A stretch of DNA of 18,655 bases from the sequence record NC_074654.1; one strand, given 5' to 3'. Position numbers and translations under genes: made by a program. How positions within the stretch are numbered: the first letter of the stretch is position 1; the number at the start of each line of letters is the position of its first letter. Of this stretch, positions 836-13,568 are shown in pieces. The notes under the pieces are model-generated. The model saw only the letters and a program-made list of their open reading frames with translations, searched no databases and was not told the DNA's origin.

Positions 836-2437
836 ATGGATAAAAACGGGGGCTATCTACCTATTATGAGCATAGGTAATGTAGACAGGATGGACGGAGG
901 CCGCGCGACCCCGGAGGCATGGCAGTCCATAATGTTCAAGTGCATAGGGGACCTCGCGAGGGAGTACGCCCACGGCAACGTTACATACACCATGGACGGG
1001 GACTTTATATTCGCGGACGTCAAGGAGGGGGAGGTCAAGAAGTCGTGGGACATAAACCTCGCGACGTGGGCCGTGGTCAAGACCGAGGGGAAAAGAAAGT
1101 ACAAGTGCCGCATGAACAACAACGAGCTGGTGTGGGTCATGACCTTCTTGGCCAAGACCCCGGTGGCCAATGCCGTGGAAATAAACGCGGCCAAGGTGGT
1201 CGGCAACACGGTGGTTATCCCGGCGTGGTGCGACAACACCCCCGTGGTCATGACCGCGGACATAAGCCAATGGACCATATCATTGGGGACGTATGCGGCC
1301 GTGGGAGGCACCTACTACTCACCGGGTCGCTATGCCTCGCTCTACTGTCCTCCCACCACGCCCCTAGAAAACCCGAGGGAGGTCCGTAGGGCCGCGGCCG
1401 CCATGGTGACCACATACGGGACCTCCCTCACCACATTGGCCATACTGCCCTACATAAATCCCGTATTCCAGAAAAGGTACGTCCCCATAGTCCTGGGCCG
1501 CATGAGGTCGGGCAAGACCTCGATACTACAAGCCATAAGGCCCCTATGGCCCAGCAACACGGTCCAAGTGTCCTCCCCCACCACGGCCGCGGTGAGGAAT
1601 TTGCTGGTGGGCCACCACGTCATAGCGGACGACGTGGCTGAGTCCGTCAATACGCCCTTCGACTACACCCTAATAGTGGCCTACTTCGACCGCAACGAGA
1701 TACCTAGGGTCCGGGTCACCGATTTACGGGTGACCTCTTTCCCGCTAAGGGGGACGCTAGCCATGGCCACAAACAACCCCCAGATATCCCTAACAAGCAT
1801 ATCGGATAGGGTGATTATCGTGGACGTGGACAGGGTCAAGGCGACGGTGGGCCTCCCGGTGTCCATAAAGGCCGACATAGAGCCGGCGTGGTTCATACTG
1901 TCTCCCCTATTCCTGGGCGTCCCCACGACCCTATTTTCCTACATGGCCGGGCTGAGGGCTGACGCCACCGACGTCAAGAACCAGATAGATGAACCGACCA
2001 AAATCGTGCTGGACAACATGGACCCAATGGTCTACTTCTATAGGTGGCTCTACTACCGCCTAGCCAGGCTGAGGGCTAACGAGTGTAGGGGCCGCGGCGT
2101 CAAGGTAATTGAAAACGACTATTGGGCCTCCTTTGACGTGAGGTATATCCCCCACCCCTCTGTGGGGGACACCGTGTCGGTCACCGTGTCGCGGTCCCTA
2201 TCGGCCTCGGACTCGGAATATTCCGTGAGCTTCGGCACGGCCCGGCAGAAATATGGGGTCGTACAAGTCAGGTTCTACCTAGAGCGCCTAAACATACCCT
2301 ACAGGTCCCAGGGCAACGTGTTCATGGTGCCGTGCTCTAGGATAGATGACATAATCGAGGTGCTGAGGCCCTATAGCGATAGGGGCCCGGCCATACCGGC
2401 CAATGGCCACGAGGCTATAAATACGGCCGGCAATTAG
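836..2437 (+). CDS. SF3 helicase-like AAA+ ATPase, putative replicative helicase, with a C-terminal winged-helix-like region
   Basis: Walker A GRMRSGKT (1496-1519), Walker B VIADD (1619-1633), motif C/sensor-1 TLAMATN (1754-1774), candidate Arg finger SDRVIIV. ATG 836 preferred over the track's TTG 827 on TATA spacing. Confidence 0.8.
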   Translation: MDKNGGYLPIMSIGNVDRMDGGRATPEAWQSIMFKCIGDLAREYAHGNVTYTMDGDFIFADVKEGEVKKSWDINLATWAVVKTEGKRKYKCRMNNNELVWVMTFLAKTPVANAVEINAAKVVGNTVVIPAWCDNTPVVMTADISQWTISLGTYAAVGGTYYSPGRYASLYCPPTTPLENPREVRRAAAAMVTTYGTSLTTLAILPYINPVFQKRYVPIVLGRMRSGKTSILQAIRPLWPSNTVQVSSPTTAAVRNLLVGHHVIADDVAESVNTPFDYTLIVAYFDRNEIPRVRVTDLRVTSFPLRGTLAMATNNPQISLTSISDRVIIVDVDRVKATVGLPVSIKADIEPAWFILSPLFLGVPTTLFSYMAGLRADATDVKNQIDEPTKIVLDNMDPMVYFYRWLYYRLARLRANECRGRGVKVIENDYWASFDVRYIPHPSVGDTVSVTVSRSLSASDSEYSVSFGTARQKYGVVQVRFYLERLNIPYRSQGNVFMVPCSRIDDIIEVLRPYSDRGPAIPANGHEAINTAGN

Positions 2438-2711: not shown

Positions 2712-3029
2712 ATGTCCTCCCTAATAGTAGAGGCCTTCGGCAAGATCATAGAGGAATTGGCCTCCCTCGATTGCGACAAAATGAGGCGGCACGAGATAAA
2801 CGGCCGCCTCTACGTGAGGATTAGAAAGCTGAGGGACGCCTCGCTATACCTAGAGGTGCTGAGGACCATATTCGGCGTAGAGGGGGCCTTTAAGTCCGAC
2901 AAGCTCATATACATACCGTGCGACGCCCTCCCCCTCATACGTGAGAGGGCCCTAGCCCTAGGAATATCACCAAAGCCAAGGACGCGGGTAGGCCCACAAG
3001 ATAGTAATAGCGTCGCGAGAGTAGGGTGA
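2712..3029 (+). CDS. 105-aa hypothetical protein, possible winged-helix DNA-binding domain
   Basis: ATG 2712 with CTAAATA about 25 nt upstream; weak similarity by eye to the helicase C-terminus (YLE.L ... hhhPC). Confidence 0.7.
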   Translation: MSSLIVEAFGKIIEELASLDCDKMRRHEINGRLYVRIRKLRDASLYLEVLRTIFGVEGAFKSDKLIYIPCDALPLIRERALALGISPKPRTRVGPQDSNSVARVG

Positions 3030-3885
3030 ACTTGACCGCTATTGCGAATAGGTTAAGGAGCGAGGGGTAGGTAGAGCCGGCCCCAGCCACAAGGAGCATA
3101 ATAACGGCCGGCACGGACACTTGGTCGTGGACGGCCGACGCCAGCATGGTGGCCACCGCCTCGGCGTCCGACTCTGACCCCACTATCCTGGCGTAGATGG
3201 CCCTTATCATGAGGGCGGCCACCAGGTCCGGCAATGCCGTCAAGAAGGCCGACGTGAGGCCCAGCCCCACCTCCGTGACCGTGAGGGCGTATATGTCCTG
3301 TATTAGGTAGTATGTGCCGTAGGCCATGCCTATGGTGTTCAGCAAGGCCGTCGCTATGACCGAAAGGGGCGGCCGGCCTCCCACCACCTCGCCAAGGTTC
3401 AGCACTATCAAGGCCGGCAAGGCCACATAGCCGGCAACCACAAGCATGGTCGAGATAAAGGCCGATTGTATGCCGGACCTGGCGTAGAGGTCCACGGTCA
3501 AGGCGGCCGCGGACCACATTATGAGGGACGGCAATAGGCGCCTAATGTAGGGGGACCCCGGGGCGTAGGGGCGGACTAAAGCCGTCACAAACACGGCGTC
3601 CACCACCGTGCTGAGGATAGTGTCTATCCATGCCGCCTCTACGTTGCCTCCCAAGGCGAGGGACACGGCACTAATAGCCTGGGGCATGGCCGAAAGGGCC
3701 GACACCACCATGACATTGTACCACACCCTCACGTCGTAGAGGGCTATGGTTATCTCGGTGGCGTATGAGGCCGACGCGAGGATAATGAGCCACATGGCTA
3801 TCCCCACCCAAGGGGAATTGACCACCATTAGGCCTATGGTCGCAAGCCCCATAACGAATTCGGCCCATATTAGGCGGTTATCCAT
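2935..3885 (-). CDS. Polytopic membrane protein, degenerate CaCA (Na+/Ca2+ exchanger) superfamily
   Basis: About 10 TM segments; two alpha-repeat-like motifs, SALSAMPQ..IDTILSTVVD and AFLTALPD..ATMLASAVHD, versus canonical GTSLPE..GNxxGSNxxN/D. Start taken at ATG 3885, not the track's TTG 4050. Confidence 0.7.
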   Translation of the reverse strand: MDNRLIWAEFVMGLATIGLMVVNSPWVGIAMWLIILASASYATEITIALYDVRVWYNVMVVSALSAMPQAISAVSLALGGNVEAAWIDTILSTVVDAVFVTALVRPYAPGSPYIRRLLPSLIMWSAAALTVDLYARSGIQSAFISTMLVVAGYVALPALIVLNLGEVVGGRPPLSVIATALLNTIGMAYGTYYLIQDIYALTVTEVGLGLTSAFLTALPDLVAALMIRAIYARIVGSESDAEAVATMLASAVHDQVSVPAVIMLLVAGAGSTYPSLLNLFAIAVKFTLLSRRYYYLVGLPASLALVIFLGLGPSHV

Positions 3886-3910
3886 ATATTGGCATATATC
3901 ACCGGTATTA

Positions 3911-4345
3911 ATGCCTCGCAGAAAGGTGAGGGAGTACAACCCCTCCGAGAGCGACACCATGAGCCTAAAGGGCACCACCGCGGCCTTGAAACATGCCGAA
4001 TTGGTCCTCGTGGCCTCCCCCACATGCCCGGCGTGCAAGGCCCTATTCAAGTCAAAAAGCGTGAGGTACTACGCCTCTAAGGGCGTCATAACCGTGGTGC
4101 CTCCGGACCGCATGAGGCTGGAGGACATGGGCGAGTGGGTCCTGGACTCTAAGGGCTTGGTCCTCATGGCCTCTACCCCCACCTTTCTAGTTAGGTGCAA
4201 GGACGGCCGCGTCCTGTGGCGCTATAGGGTCCAAGCCGTCGATATATACAATGCCGACGCGGTCATGCAATTGGTCCTCGGCACGTTCAAGAGCCTGGCA
4301 ATTGAGTGCATGCCCGAGGACGCGGCCGGCGTAGAGGGCCTATGA
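3911..4345 (+). CDS. Thioredoxin/glutaredoxin-like CxxC protein
   Basis: ASPTCPACK active-site motif (CxxC at 4025-4036) after a beta-strand, plus downstream STPTF cis-Pro-like motif. Start at ATG 3911 or 3959. Confidence 0.72.
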   Translation: MPRRKVREYNPSESDTMSLKGTTAALKHAELVLVASPTCPACKALFKSKSVRYYASKGVITVVPPDRMRLEDMGEWVLDSKGLVLMASTPTFLVRCKDGRVLWRYRVQAVDIYNADAVMQLVLGTFKSLAIECMPEDAAGVEGL

Positions 4346-4446
4346 ATTGCGATTGTATGCAAAAAATCATAGAGGAATTGGTGCGTAGGGGGGTGGTAAG
4401 CAAGGAGGACGCCAAGAAGATGGCCGAGAAATTGGCCAAGGCATGA
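4342..4446 (+). CDS. 34-aa microprotein MNCDCMQKIIEELVRRGVVSKEDAKKMAEKLAKA (not in ORF track); SHOCT-like helical pattern
   Basis: ATGA overlap with the upstream stop (4342-4345) and ATGA overlap with the downstream start (4443-4446). Confidence 0.8.
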   Translation: MNCDCMQKIIEELVRRGVVSKEDAKKMAEKLAKA

Positions 4447-4721
4447 TTCCGTGCAAGGCCGATAGCATGGCCGAAATAGTGAGGCGGGTCCGGGACGCCT
4501 TAAAGCCCCTAGGCAACTACTACGTGTTCAGCTCAGACCTTGCCGATTGCCTCACGAGGATAAAGCTGGCCTTGCTCATGTACGCCCGTCAGACCGGGGA
4601 CGCCATGGTGTACGCCTACGCCAATTTCAATTTCAATTGCCCCGGCAACATGTGCGTCGTGCCTCCCTCGATTATGGAGGTGCTGGACTTCGCCCTAATC
4701 ACTATAGCAAGTTCAGCATAA
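4443..4721 (+). CDS. 92-aa hypothetical protein
   Basis: Coupled start, typical codon usage, followed by a TATA box for the next gene. Confidence 0.75.
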   Translation: MIPCKADSMAEIVRRVRDALKPLGNYYVFSSDLADCLTRIKLALLMYARQTGDAMVYAYANFNFNCPGNMCVVPPSIMEVLDFALITIASSA

Positions 4722-11919: not shown

Positions 11920-12663
11920 ATGATAATCCCGCTAGCATTGGGGTCGCTAGCCGCCTTGATACTCGTGGCCCTAATGGGGAGCCGCAACATGCTGGTGTAC
12001 ATACTTATAGAGATATTCGTGTCGGGGGCCTTGGCCCTTGCCGGCGTTGCCGCGTCCACATACGCCCTATTCTCGGGTCTATTCATAGCGGCCATGGCCC
12101 TATGGATAATAACCCACGTAGAGGAAAGGGTGGTTGAAAGGGCCGTGGTGACGCTTTTATCGGTGACCCTGGTGTGGGCCTCTAACAACGCGGTGGCCGC
12201 CCAAGCCCTAGGCGCCCTATCCTATGACATAATCGAGCCCTTCTTCGCGGCATTGGCCACGGTGGGGGACGTGGTGCTGGGCGTCTCGGGCTTCGGTGCC
12301 CTATTCGCCTACATGGTCCTATCCAGCCGCATACTGTCGCTAGCTGAGGAAAACCCGCTAGTGGCTATAGGCTATGTCTACCTCGCCAATGCCGTCCTGT
12401 CGGCCTTGGTGGCGCCCATGCCGGACTTTCTCAAGCTTGCCCTAGGCCTGGCCTTGCTGTACCCGCTAGGGAGGGCCATTAGGGGCAACCTTGAGGCCCT
12501 AGCTGAGGTCGCGCCCGTCCTCTACCTCCTGCCTATCCAGCCCTCGGTCCTGGTACAGCTGGGTGCGGTCATGGCCCTCGTGGAATTGGCTATGGCGATA
12601 CTGTCGCGCAAGCACTTGGTGGGGGCCGCCATGTGGGCCGCGGCCTTGCTATTCGTGGCATGA
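11920..12663 (+). CDS. Polytopic membrane protein (about 8 TM)
   Basis: Almost wholly hydrophobic; ATG 11920 is 26 nt after TATAAAT (11894-11900). Confidence 0.82.
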   Translation: MIIPLALGSLAALILVALMGSRNMLVYILIEIFVSGALALAGVAASTYALFSGLFIAAMALWIITHVEERVVERAVVTLLSVTLVWASNNAVAAQALGALSYDIIEPFFAALATVGDVVLGVSGFGALFAYMVLSSRILSLAEENPLVAIGYVYLANAVLSALVAPMPDFLKLALGLALLYPLGRAIRGNLEALAEVAPVLYLLPIQPSVLVQLGAVMALVELAMAILSRKHLVGAAMWAAALLFVA

Positions 12664-13568
12664 GCTCGTTCATACCGGACCTAGCCGAATACTCGGCCCT
12701 TTTAATACTCGCCATTTTCCTGCCCACCTTGGTCTATGGCGCCATGTCCATGTACCTCGGACCGTCGCCTAACCTGTTTATTATCCAGGCAATAGCCCTA
12801 GCGGCCGTGACCGTAAAGCTGGCTAGGGAGAACCTATTTGACGGGGTTCTATTCGCGGCCGGGGCCTCGATATTCACGGCCATAGCCTACCTCGTGCCCG
12901 TCCCCAAGCTATTCATAGAGGGCTTTAGCGCAATATTGGGGCCCTTTATCAACACCCTGCTGAGCACCGTCATAGAGTTCTTCGCCTTCGGCCTCGCCAT
13001 AGGGGCCATTATGGGCCTTGCCGGCATATTCGTGTCGTTCATAGCCGGCATTATCGGCTTTCTGCTAACGGCCTTTATCATGATATTCGCGAGGCTGTCC
13101 AGGCTGGTGTATGAGGCCACCGAGGCGGCCACGTCACTATTCATTAAGGCCGTGCCGGAGGGGGTCGGAGCCGTCCTGGCGCCCTACTTCGGAGGCATTG
13201 TCATAGCGGCCCCCATAGCCGTGGCCATATCGGTCATAGCCGCGGCCGCGGCCCTATGGCTTGGCATGCTCATAGGCATGGCCATAACCGGCGTGCTATT
13301 CCTCAACGTGAACCTGATACTCTACGGCCTGGCCTCGATATTTTCGGCCGTGTTGCTGAGGCCGCAGTCAATTCCCGTCATAGACATGGCCATGGACATA
13401 GCGGCCCTTGTCCTGGTGCCCTACGTGGTGCCCGTCCTGTGGACCGTGGGCTATGCCTTGCTGTCAAGCCGGAGGTACGCCCACCGCGGCATGTACTTTA
13501 TCGGCATATCGGCCGCGGCCGTGGTGGTCTACGCCCAAGCCGCCTCTATCCTCACGGCCATAATTTAA
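12660..13568 (+). CDS. Polytopic membrane protein (about 9 TM), transporter-like
   Basis: ATGA coupling with the previous gene; Gly/Ala-rich TM helices. Confidence 0.82.
   Translation: MSSFIPDLAEYSALLILAIFLPTLVYGAMSMYLGPSPNLFIIQAIALAAVTVKLARENLFDGVLFAAGASIFTAIAYLVPVPKLFIEGFSAILGPFINTLLSTVIEFFAFGLAIGAIMGLAGIFVSFIAGIIGFLLTAFIMIFARLSRLVYEATEAATSLFIKAVPEGVGAVLAPYFGGIVIAAPIAVAISVIAAAAALWLGMLIGMAITGVLFLNVNLILYGLASIFSAVLLRPQSIPVIDMAMDIAALVLVPYVVPVLWTVGYALLSSRRYAHRGMYFIGISAAAVVVYAQAASILTAII

Follow-up and report, generated by a model that had tools for sequence, protein, structure and literature searches.

The window analyzed here is the 18,655-bp sequence of TSPV1 (GenBank MT047590 / NC_074654), a globulovirus with small enveloped particles that infects hot-spring archaea, and all positions refer to that whole stretch; megablast matched it to that record at 100% over 18,655 bp. 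All 31 of its genes (31/31) were deposited as "hypothetical protein." We focused on GP2, a minus-strand gene for a multi-pass membrane protein of 316 amino acids, which an earlier reading of the same DNA (hereafter the original prediction) had taken for a CaCA-family cation exchanger with altered ion-binding residues. Judged from predicted structures, GP2 belongs at the fold level to the CaCA superfamily (TC 2.A.19) as a divergent and virus-specific branch, and it is not a member of NCX, NCKX, CCX/NCLX, CAX or YrbG.

The gene is widespread among its relatives. GP2 matches phrog_33563 over its full length (E 5.5e-87, profile positions 9–311 of 313), and tblastn found orthologues in all other named globuloviruses, with identities of 48% for TTSV1 gp04, 42% for PSV gp03 and 39% for PSV2 gp03. 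In BLAST comparisons of GP1 to GP11 with the named globuloviruses, GP2 gave the lowest E-values. A further homologue lies on JBEULK010000073.1, a 16.8-kb contig binned in a Pyrobaculum metagenome-assembled genome (MAG); we regard this contig as viral because it also encodes homologues of GP3, 5, 7, 8, 9, 10 and 11, and its gene content suggests the genome of a globulovirus, or a provirus, that was binned together with the host. Distant members of the family, with 24–37% identity, sit on hot-spring metagenome contigs; according to BLAST, one of these contigs has GP7, 9, 10 and 11 in common with TSPV1 and the other only GP2. A scan of IMG/VR for the GP2 family returned TTSV1 itself only.

The basic identification is not new, as the resemblance to cation exchangers was published in 2020 for the orthologous ORF3 of PSV2 (YP_010772697; 39% identity over 91% of GP2, same phrog_33563). 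Baquero et al. (2020, bioRxiv 10.1101/2020.01.16.907410) called that protein a cation-exchanger-like membrane transporter and reported an HHpred value of 95.5% to bacterial and archaeal cation exchangers and nine predicted transmembrane (TM) segments; the HHpred value is independent of the models made here. PSV2 ORF3 has the same invariant residues as GP2 and the same place beside a gene for an AAA+ ATPase. Our literature search found no other paper that mentions the cation-exchanger resemblance of the gene. What the present analysis adds to the PSV2 paper is strong confirmation at the level of the fold, an 11-helix, CAX-like topology and a rewired pocket that is invariant across the family; also new are a probable correction of the GP2 start and the finding of family members in uncultured viruses. 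Few viruses are as poorly understood as the globuloviruses, and modeling now firmly assigns a fold to a gene that ranks among the best conserved in this group. For a viral genome of 18.7 kb, a multi-pass fold of the secondary-transporter type is an unusual investment. The gain is limited in that the resemblance of PSV2 ORF3 had been published earlier and in that we infer the function of GP2.

Predicted fold of GP2

To limit the reliance on a single alignment, we made two AlphaFold2 models from disjoint sets of sequences. The first, based on a 12-sequence alignment, had a mean predicted local distance difference test score (pLDDT) of 84.8 and a predicted template modeling score (pTM) of 0.83; the second, based on eight sequences of the distant clade with the TSPV1 clade excluded, had scores of 86.0 and 0.86, respectively. 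The GP2 model consists of eleven long helices connected by very short loops and contains no regulatory domain. By their structural matches, both models have the ten-helix core of two inverted halves of five TM helices that defines CaCA proteins, in which TM2–TM3 and TM7–TM8 form the central pocket, and as far as models can tell, a CaCA fold with an inverted two-fold 10-TM core is clearly present. TM7 is broken (kinked) at residue 217, just ahead of P219–D220, as is the TM7 of CaCA proteins at its signature.

The top structural matches of the models all fell within one superfamily. When we searched the PDB with Foldseek, the best 24 matches were all CaCA proteins with probability 1.00, after which the probability fell to ~0.1; CAX_Af (4kpp) was found at E 7e-5, and NCX_Mj, YfkE, VCX1 and AtCAX1 were found as well. 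VIA-align, run against 48,161 representative chains with the TSPV1 model, gave Z scores of 22.2 for CAX_Af (4kpp, 297 of 316 residues aligned), 21.1 for human NCX1 (8sgi), 19.6 for NCLX (9ps1), 19.2 for NCX_Mj (3v5s, 268 residues aligned), 18.8 for YfkE (4kjr) and 18.1 for both VCX1 (4k1c) and AtCAX1 (9vsa), the next unrelated chain being at 11.4. With the distant-clade model, the scores for the same chains in the same order were 20.5, 22.4, 20.4, 18.7, 19.8, 18.9 and 18.7, and the next unrelated chain was at 10.0. In the ESM Atlas, the shape search returned a PF01699 cluster with a template modeling score of 0.70 over residues 23–313, followed by a row at 0.32, and the feature search returned a PF01699 cluster at 0.92, with 98 of 100 matches within the PF01699 family set. 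The exchanger fold of the original prediction is therefore borne out by two models, with all seven CaCA representatives at Z 18–22, and the comparison with NCX_Mj that had been proposed as a check came out in its favor; Foldseek and the ESM Atlas agree.

The model contains one helix ahead of the 10-TM core, here called TM0. The CAX chains (4kpp, 4kjr, 4k1c and 9vsa) align from model residue 1–2 and the NCX-type chains only from about 15–23, which makes TM0 the counterpart of the additional helix in CAX proteins. The predicted orientation is that canonical for CaCA proteins, the N terminus being placed inside because of TM0. Of the lysines and arginines within five residues of the loops, 10 are on the side predicted to be cytoplasmic and 1 is on the opposite side.

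Conserved residues and the putative ion site

Among 16 homologues, down to 24% identity, 27 alignment columns are invariant, and most of the polar ones are on TM2, TM3, TM7 and TM8. The set includes the residues listed for the two repeats in the table, together with E44, P219, D220 and P259. The repeat motifs of GP2 read L-S-A-M-P-Q and L-T-A-L-P-D, and Glu is found at position 69 or 220 in none of the homologues (0/16).

We mapped these residues onto NCX_Mj by spacing, helix ends and profile alignment, with an uncertainty of ~1 residue; the numbering of NCX_Mj was read off a residue-by-residue alignment (P53–E54, S77, N81, P212–E213, S236 and D240). From helix ends and spacing, an ungapped offset of +15 runs through TM2–TM3 and pairs A47 with S62, E54 with Q69, N73 with D88, S77 with S92 and N81 with D96, while the offset is +7 on TM7 (E213 to D220) and +14 on TM8 (S236 to S250 and D240 to D254). 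Within GP2, TM3 and TM8 correspond at an offset of 158 (D88/T246, S92/S250, T93/A251 and D96/D254), which agrees with the helix starts at residues 82 and 240 in the model. In hhalign, TM3 and TM8 are aligned with gaps, and the alignment is one residue off the spacing-based mapping at TM8.

The motif spacings noticed in the original prediction hold. In repeat 1, 22 residues lie between Q69 and S92, exactly as between E54 and S77 of NCX_Mj, followed by the S-x3-D; in repeat 2, P-D is followed by a loop longer by 7 residues, with 29 (22 + 7) residues between D220 and S250, and then by S-AVH-D. In 20,000 composition-preserving shuffles of the GP2 protein, both motifs occurred jointly in the right halves with a frequency of 5e-5. 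S250 of the latter motif is not conserved, the position being S, A or G among the homologues. The signature glycines are indeed lost, G49, G76, G208 and G235 of NCX_Mj being replaced by L64, L91, L215 and A249, and neither the glycines nor the equivalents of T50, S51 and S210 are conserved in the GP2 family. The claim of two alpha-repeats stands on the motifs and the predicted fold and does not extend to the sequence as such: an hhalign comparison of the N-terminal half with the C-terminal half gave a nonsignificant E of 0.59, and because of this the sequence repeat was dropped as evidence.

The claim of altered ion-binding residues holds for one repeat. The pocket of NCX_Mj has three carboxylates, E54, E213 and D240; an Asp stands at repeat 1 in NCLX and, within GTSVPD, at repeat 2 in eukaryotic NCX and NCKX (PMC8366772). 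Asp220 of GP2 is thus ordinary, because eukaryotic NCX and NCKX have the same residue there, and the alteration is confined to Gln69 of repeat 1. As read from the alignment, the real departures would be the neutral Gln of repeat 1, a carboxylate in place of N81, and His253 and Gln255, both invariant, beside the D240 equivalent. Taken together, Gln69 and Asp96 give an apparent swap, with the E54/N81 pair turned into Q/D, by which three carboxylates are kept and none is on TM2. Where the CaCA families reviewed in PMC8366772 have Glu or Asp, GP2 has a neutral Gln, and the compensating Asp is on the neighboring helix. The GP2 family can serve as a natural experiment for the question of how ion selectivity and coupling are set in CaCA proteins.

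Compared with the known systems, GP2 shares with NCX_Mj (Methanocaldococcus jannaschii MJ0091; 3V5U/3V5S) the ten-helix inverted-repeat core, the Pro before the key residue of TM2 and TM7, the identical spacing to the S-x3-polar pair of TM3, three pocket carboxylates, a length of ~300 amino acids and minimal loops. In contrast to NCX_Mj, it has the extra TM0, a TM7–TM8 connection longer by 7 residues, and H253 and Q255 beside the D240 equivalent; E54, N81 and E213 are replaced by Gln, Asp and Asp, respectively, the glycines of GTSLPE and of the G-S are lost, and there is no similarity at the level of hidden Markov models. The CAX family (CAX_Af 4KPP, YfkE 4KJR, VCX1 4K1C and AtCAX1 9VSA) includes the best structural match of the TSPV1 model, CAX_Af, and has 11 helices, among them an N-terminal helix aligned with GP2 residues 1–21. 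However, GP2 lacks the GNxxE(H) motif of CAX proteins (PMC8366772), having neither the G-N nor the Glu, and its invariant His is on TM8 and not beside the repeat-2 acid. NCKX and eukaryotic NCX resemble GP2 in the Asp after the repeat-2 Pro, GTS(V/I)PD, and NCKX additionally in a carboxylate at the D240 position and in having three carboxylates in all (PMC8366772), but they keep the repeat-1 Glu and the Gly/Ser/Thr ligands and are large proteins with regulatory loops. The signatures of NCX and YrbG, G(T/S)SxPE on TM2 and G(T/S)SxP(E/D) on TM7, are absent from GP2.

Table. Positions of GP2, its motifs and repeats, and other features in the 18,655-bp window
Feature	Position	Strand	Description	Basis
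GP2 coding sequence	2935..3885	minus	316 amino acids from MDNRL, and TGA stop at 2935-2937	Translation
N-terminal extension of GP2 in GenBank	3886..3960	minus	25 codons; annotated GP2 is 2935-3960	GenBank annotation
TTAATA box	3906..3911		21-26 nt upstream of the GP2 ATG at 3885	
TM0	3823..3879	minus	Extra N-terminal helix, residues 3-21, ahead of the 10-TM core	DSSP of model
Repeat 1	3574..3726	minus	TM2-TM3, residues 54-104; invariant N57, S62, P68-Q69, D88, S92-T93, D96	Homologue alignment, helix ends of model
P68-Q69	3679..3684	minus	Gln at the repeat-1 Glu position (NCX_Mj E54)	Translation, profile alignment
S92-T-V-V-D96	3598..3612	minus	On TM3; corresponds to NCX_Mj S77 and N81 by spacing	Spacing and helix boundaries, ~1 residue uncertainty
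Repeat 2	3091..3273	minus	TM7-TM8, residues 205-265; on TM8 invariant T246, M247, H253-D254-Q255	Alignment, model
P219-D220	3226..3231	minus	Asp at the repeat-2 Glu position (NCX_Mj E213)	Translation, profile alignment
S250-A-V-H253-D254-Q255	3121..3138	minus	On TM8; D254 is the NCX_Mj D240 equivalent	Spacing
GP1	836..2437	plus	Homologous to TTSV1 ORF1, PSV ORF582, PSV2 ORF2	
GP20	12660..13568	plus	Second large multi-pass membrane protein, phrog_38616	

Is GP2 a working transporter?

At the level of sequence, the similarity between GP2 and CaCA proteins is weak and nearly gone. For the comparison with cellular proteins, we used TIGR00367 to gather CaCA genes from 61 genomes of Thermoprotei, the class to which the Pyrobaculum MAG belongs, and aligned 18 of them; the resulting profile matches NCX_Mj at 3e-22. 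Aligned to these 18 proteins with hhalign, the viral family gave an E of 0.002, a probability of 13% and 231 collinear columns, with P–Q69 set on the P-E of repeat 1 and P–D220 on the P-E of repeat 2. Sequence and profile searches of the PDB, with GP2 alone and with the family alignment, returned 0 matches even at E 10. An exhaustive phmmer search of 1.84 billion representatives found 13 proteins, all of the GP2 viral family and no cellular CaCA protein among them, and word-index searches found 6 proteins with the single sequence and 10 with the alignment, none of them with a Pfam domain. The same Pyrobaculum MAG also carries a canonical P-E CaCA gene, which is in the aligned CaCA set and whose profile matches the viral family weakly. 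Our genome scan gave no sign of a recent host donor of GP2, the one contig found in a Pyrobaculum MAG being the one that looks viral. The original prediction had staked itself on a PF01699 match and on an inverted two-fold 10-TM topology; no PF01699 match was found in the precomputed Pfam annotation or by HMMER, the topology is present in the models, and the reading is not refuted.

We lean toward the view that GP2 still transports cations or protons, but with a changed selectivity. A working ion site is favored because buried acidic and polar residues are invariant on exactly the four ion-binding helices in very divergent viruses. On this reading, GP2 would be a very diverged CaCA homologue made of an N-terminal helix and two inverted five-helix halves, and its mid-membrane pocket would have been kept but rewired, with Gln, Asp, Asp and Asp at NCX_Mj positions 54, 81, 213 and 240 and an adjacent invariant His. 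It would act by alternating access, with a selectivity differing from that of Ca2+/Na+ exchange, in the membrane of the infected cell, from where it could enter the host-derived virion envelope.

Several observations weigh against this reading. Both AlphaFold2 models may be biased in the same way by the CaCA structures from which the method learnt. The NCBIfam search with GP2 gave no match, and for the 15 family members that have an entry for precomputed Pfam domains, none is given. HMMER comparisons of the viral family with the 18 Thermoprotei CaCA proteins, made in both directions, were not significant (≤7.7 bits), and the hhalign comparisons of the family with CaCA proteins overall, at E 0.002–0.009, had probabilities of just 4–13%. 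The canonical repeat signatures, G-T/S-S-x-P-E and G-S-x3-N/D, are absent from GP2; the break is at repeat 1, where the invariant Gln69 is not acidic, while Asp220 of repeat 2 is acceptable. With an uncharged Gln in the place of the main Ca2+ ligand, the transport of Ca2+, or all transport, could be lost. Finally, the ratio of nonsynonymous to synonymous substitution rates (dN/dS) was 0.53 against the 97%-identical closest relative, which with 21 differences is based on too few changes to inform.

Among the alternatives, it is unlikely that GP2 is a transport-dead scaffold, in which the CaCA fold is kept as an envelope component, a platform for assembly or budding or a partner of another viral protein. 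Such a role would suit a neutral Gln in place of the main Ca2+ ligand of repeat 1, the loss of the helix-breaking glycines and the detection of GP2 by BLAST as one of few genes in uncultured relatives. It would also suit an enveloped virus encoding many membrane proteins, 13 ORFs of PSV2 having a predicted membrane-spanning region (Baquero et al. 2020, bioRxiv 10.1101/2020.01.16.907410). However, a scaffold would have no need for Asp, Gln, His, Ser and Thr residues that are buried and invariant on exactly the four ion-binding helices at 24% identity, and buried carboxylates are costly unless used.

Somewhat more doubtful than the scaffold is an uncoupled leak or viroporin-like uniporter that passes protons or cations down their gradient and thereby depolarizes the host or equilibrates the virion interior. 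The original prediction had named a leak channel as its alternative to a repurposed exchanger, with a possible change in the ion or pH balance of the host. The change from Glu to Gln removes one charge from the coupling site, the invariant H253 beside D254 could relay protons, and the minimal loops and the lack of a regulatory domain would fit. On the other hand, we know of no natural CaCA protein that works as a channel. Globuloviruses are reported to leave the cell without lysis, and a strong depolarization of the host would then be costly. Coupled transport would fit the present data just as well.

That GP2 transports another substrate, for instance Mg2+ or a transition metal, through the His–Asp pair and the aspartates of TM3 seems very improbable: judged by residue chemistry only, the invariant H253–D254 would supply, with D88 and D96, a mixture of N and O ligands that is uncommon at Ca2+ sites. 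That GP2 is no CaCA homologue at all and owes its likeness to convergence or to an AlphaFold artefact on a generic helical bundle is scarcely credible, as the weak sequence statistics and the lack of a detectable sequence repeat between the halves stand against matches of seven CaCA families to 268–298 of 316 residues, ~8–10 Z units above the next chain with both disjoint-alignment models, a collinear profile alignment with both P-E motifs in register, the HHpred value published for PSV2 ORF3 and ESM Atlas features that point to PF01699.

The preferred reading, a cation or proton transporter with altered selectivity, has a bolder form, in which GP2 is a working transporter of the virion envelope and its His/Asp/Gln pocket carries protons or cations from the medium to the virion interior or back. 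We think this quite improbable, though less so than the transport of another substrate. In the envelope, GP2 might, for example, hold the nucleoprotein in a condensed state at about 85 °C or, like influenza M2, trigger uncoating on entry. If true, it would be the first working virion component with a secondary-transporter fold in a virus of prokaryotes and would represent a CaCA branch with non-Ca2+ selectivity.

Gene start, expression and neighboring genes

The deposited start of GP2 (3960) is probably 75 nt too far upstream, the true start probably being the ATG at 3885, and the stretch in between is probably noncoding and a promoter region instead. We doubt the start at 3960 because the 25-residue extension is found in no homologue and because a TTAATA box stands ahead of the ATG at 3885. 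The homologues, of 307–323 amino acids, start at a Met aligned to that of 3885. The position of the box suits an archaeal TATA box and a leaderless mRNA. The annotated ATG at 3960 overlaps the start of the divergent GP3 (3959).

In metatranscriptome data, one contig covers 2727–3859 at 98.6% identity and the next covers 3919–4709, these being assembled contigs with a possible carry-over of DNA. The gap between the two is exactly the divergent intergenic stretch of GP2 and GP3, and the contigs give weak backing to a GP2 start at 3885. With the same proviso on DNA carry-over, they suggest that GP2 is expressed. The GP3–GP4 contig stops at 3919 with an Illumina adapter attached, an end that could be a fragment end or the 5' end of an RNA, 40 nt upstream of the GP3 ATG at 3959. 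Two runs with approximately half of the sampled words of GP2, one of them the metatranscriptome with the GP3–GP4 contig, are labeled "hypersaline lake metagenome"; such a habitat would be unexpected for a Thermoproteus virus, and the labeling is probably at fault.

Two of the divergent virus-like contigs, JGI 3300005799 (14 kb) and JGI 3300021973 (13 kb), carry a member of the GP2 family and PAPS-reductase-like genes. The former also encodes a DNA methylase and a PBP2-like protein and has a homologue of GP7 directly after that of GP2. The latter, in which BLAST finds only GP2 in common with TSPV1, has two paralogues of ~315–321 amino acids (28% identical) upstream of the GP2 homologue, with a gene for 297 amino acids between them and the second paralogue directly before the GP2 homologue.

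The GP2 homologue adjoins the homologue of GP1 or sits within ~1 kb of it in all four named globuloviruses. GP2 is inverted relative to GP1 in the Thermoproteus viruses and co-directional with it in the Pyrobaculum viruses. The GP1 counterpart in PSV2, ORF2, has been described as a ClpB-like AAA+ ATPase (Baquero et al. 2020, bioRxiv 10.1101/2020.01.16.907410); GP1 itself gave no PHROG or NCBIfam match. GP20 is probably the counterpart of PSV2 ORF9, judged by length only (both 302 amino acids), and its ESM Atlas model was poor (pLDDT 0.51), with no usable match by fold or by features. One hot-spring DNA contig joins position 177 to 2587, with 23 nt on the shorter side, and skips 2,409 bp including the whole of GP1; a repeated sequence, and not a variant with a deletion, may explain the join.

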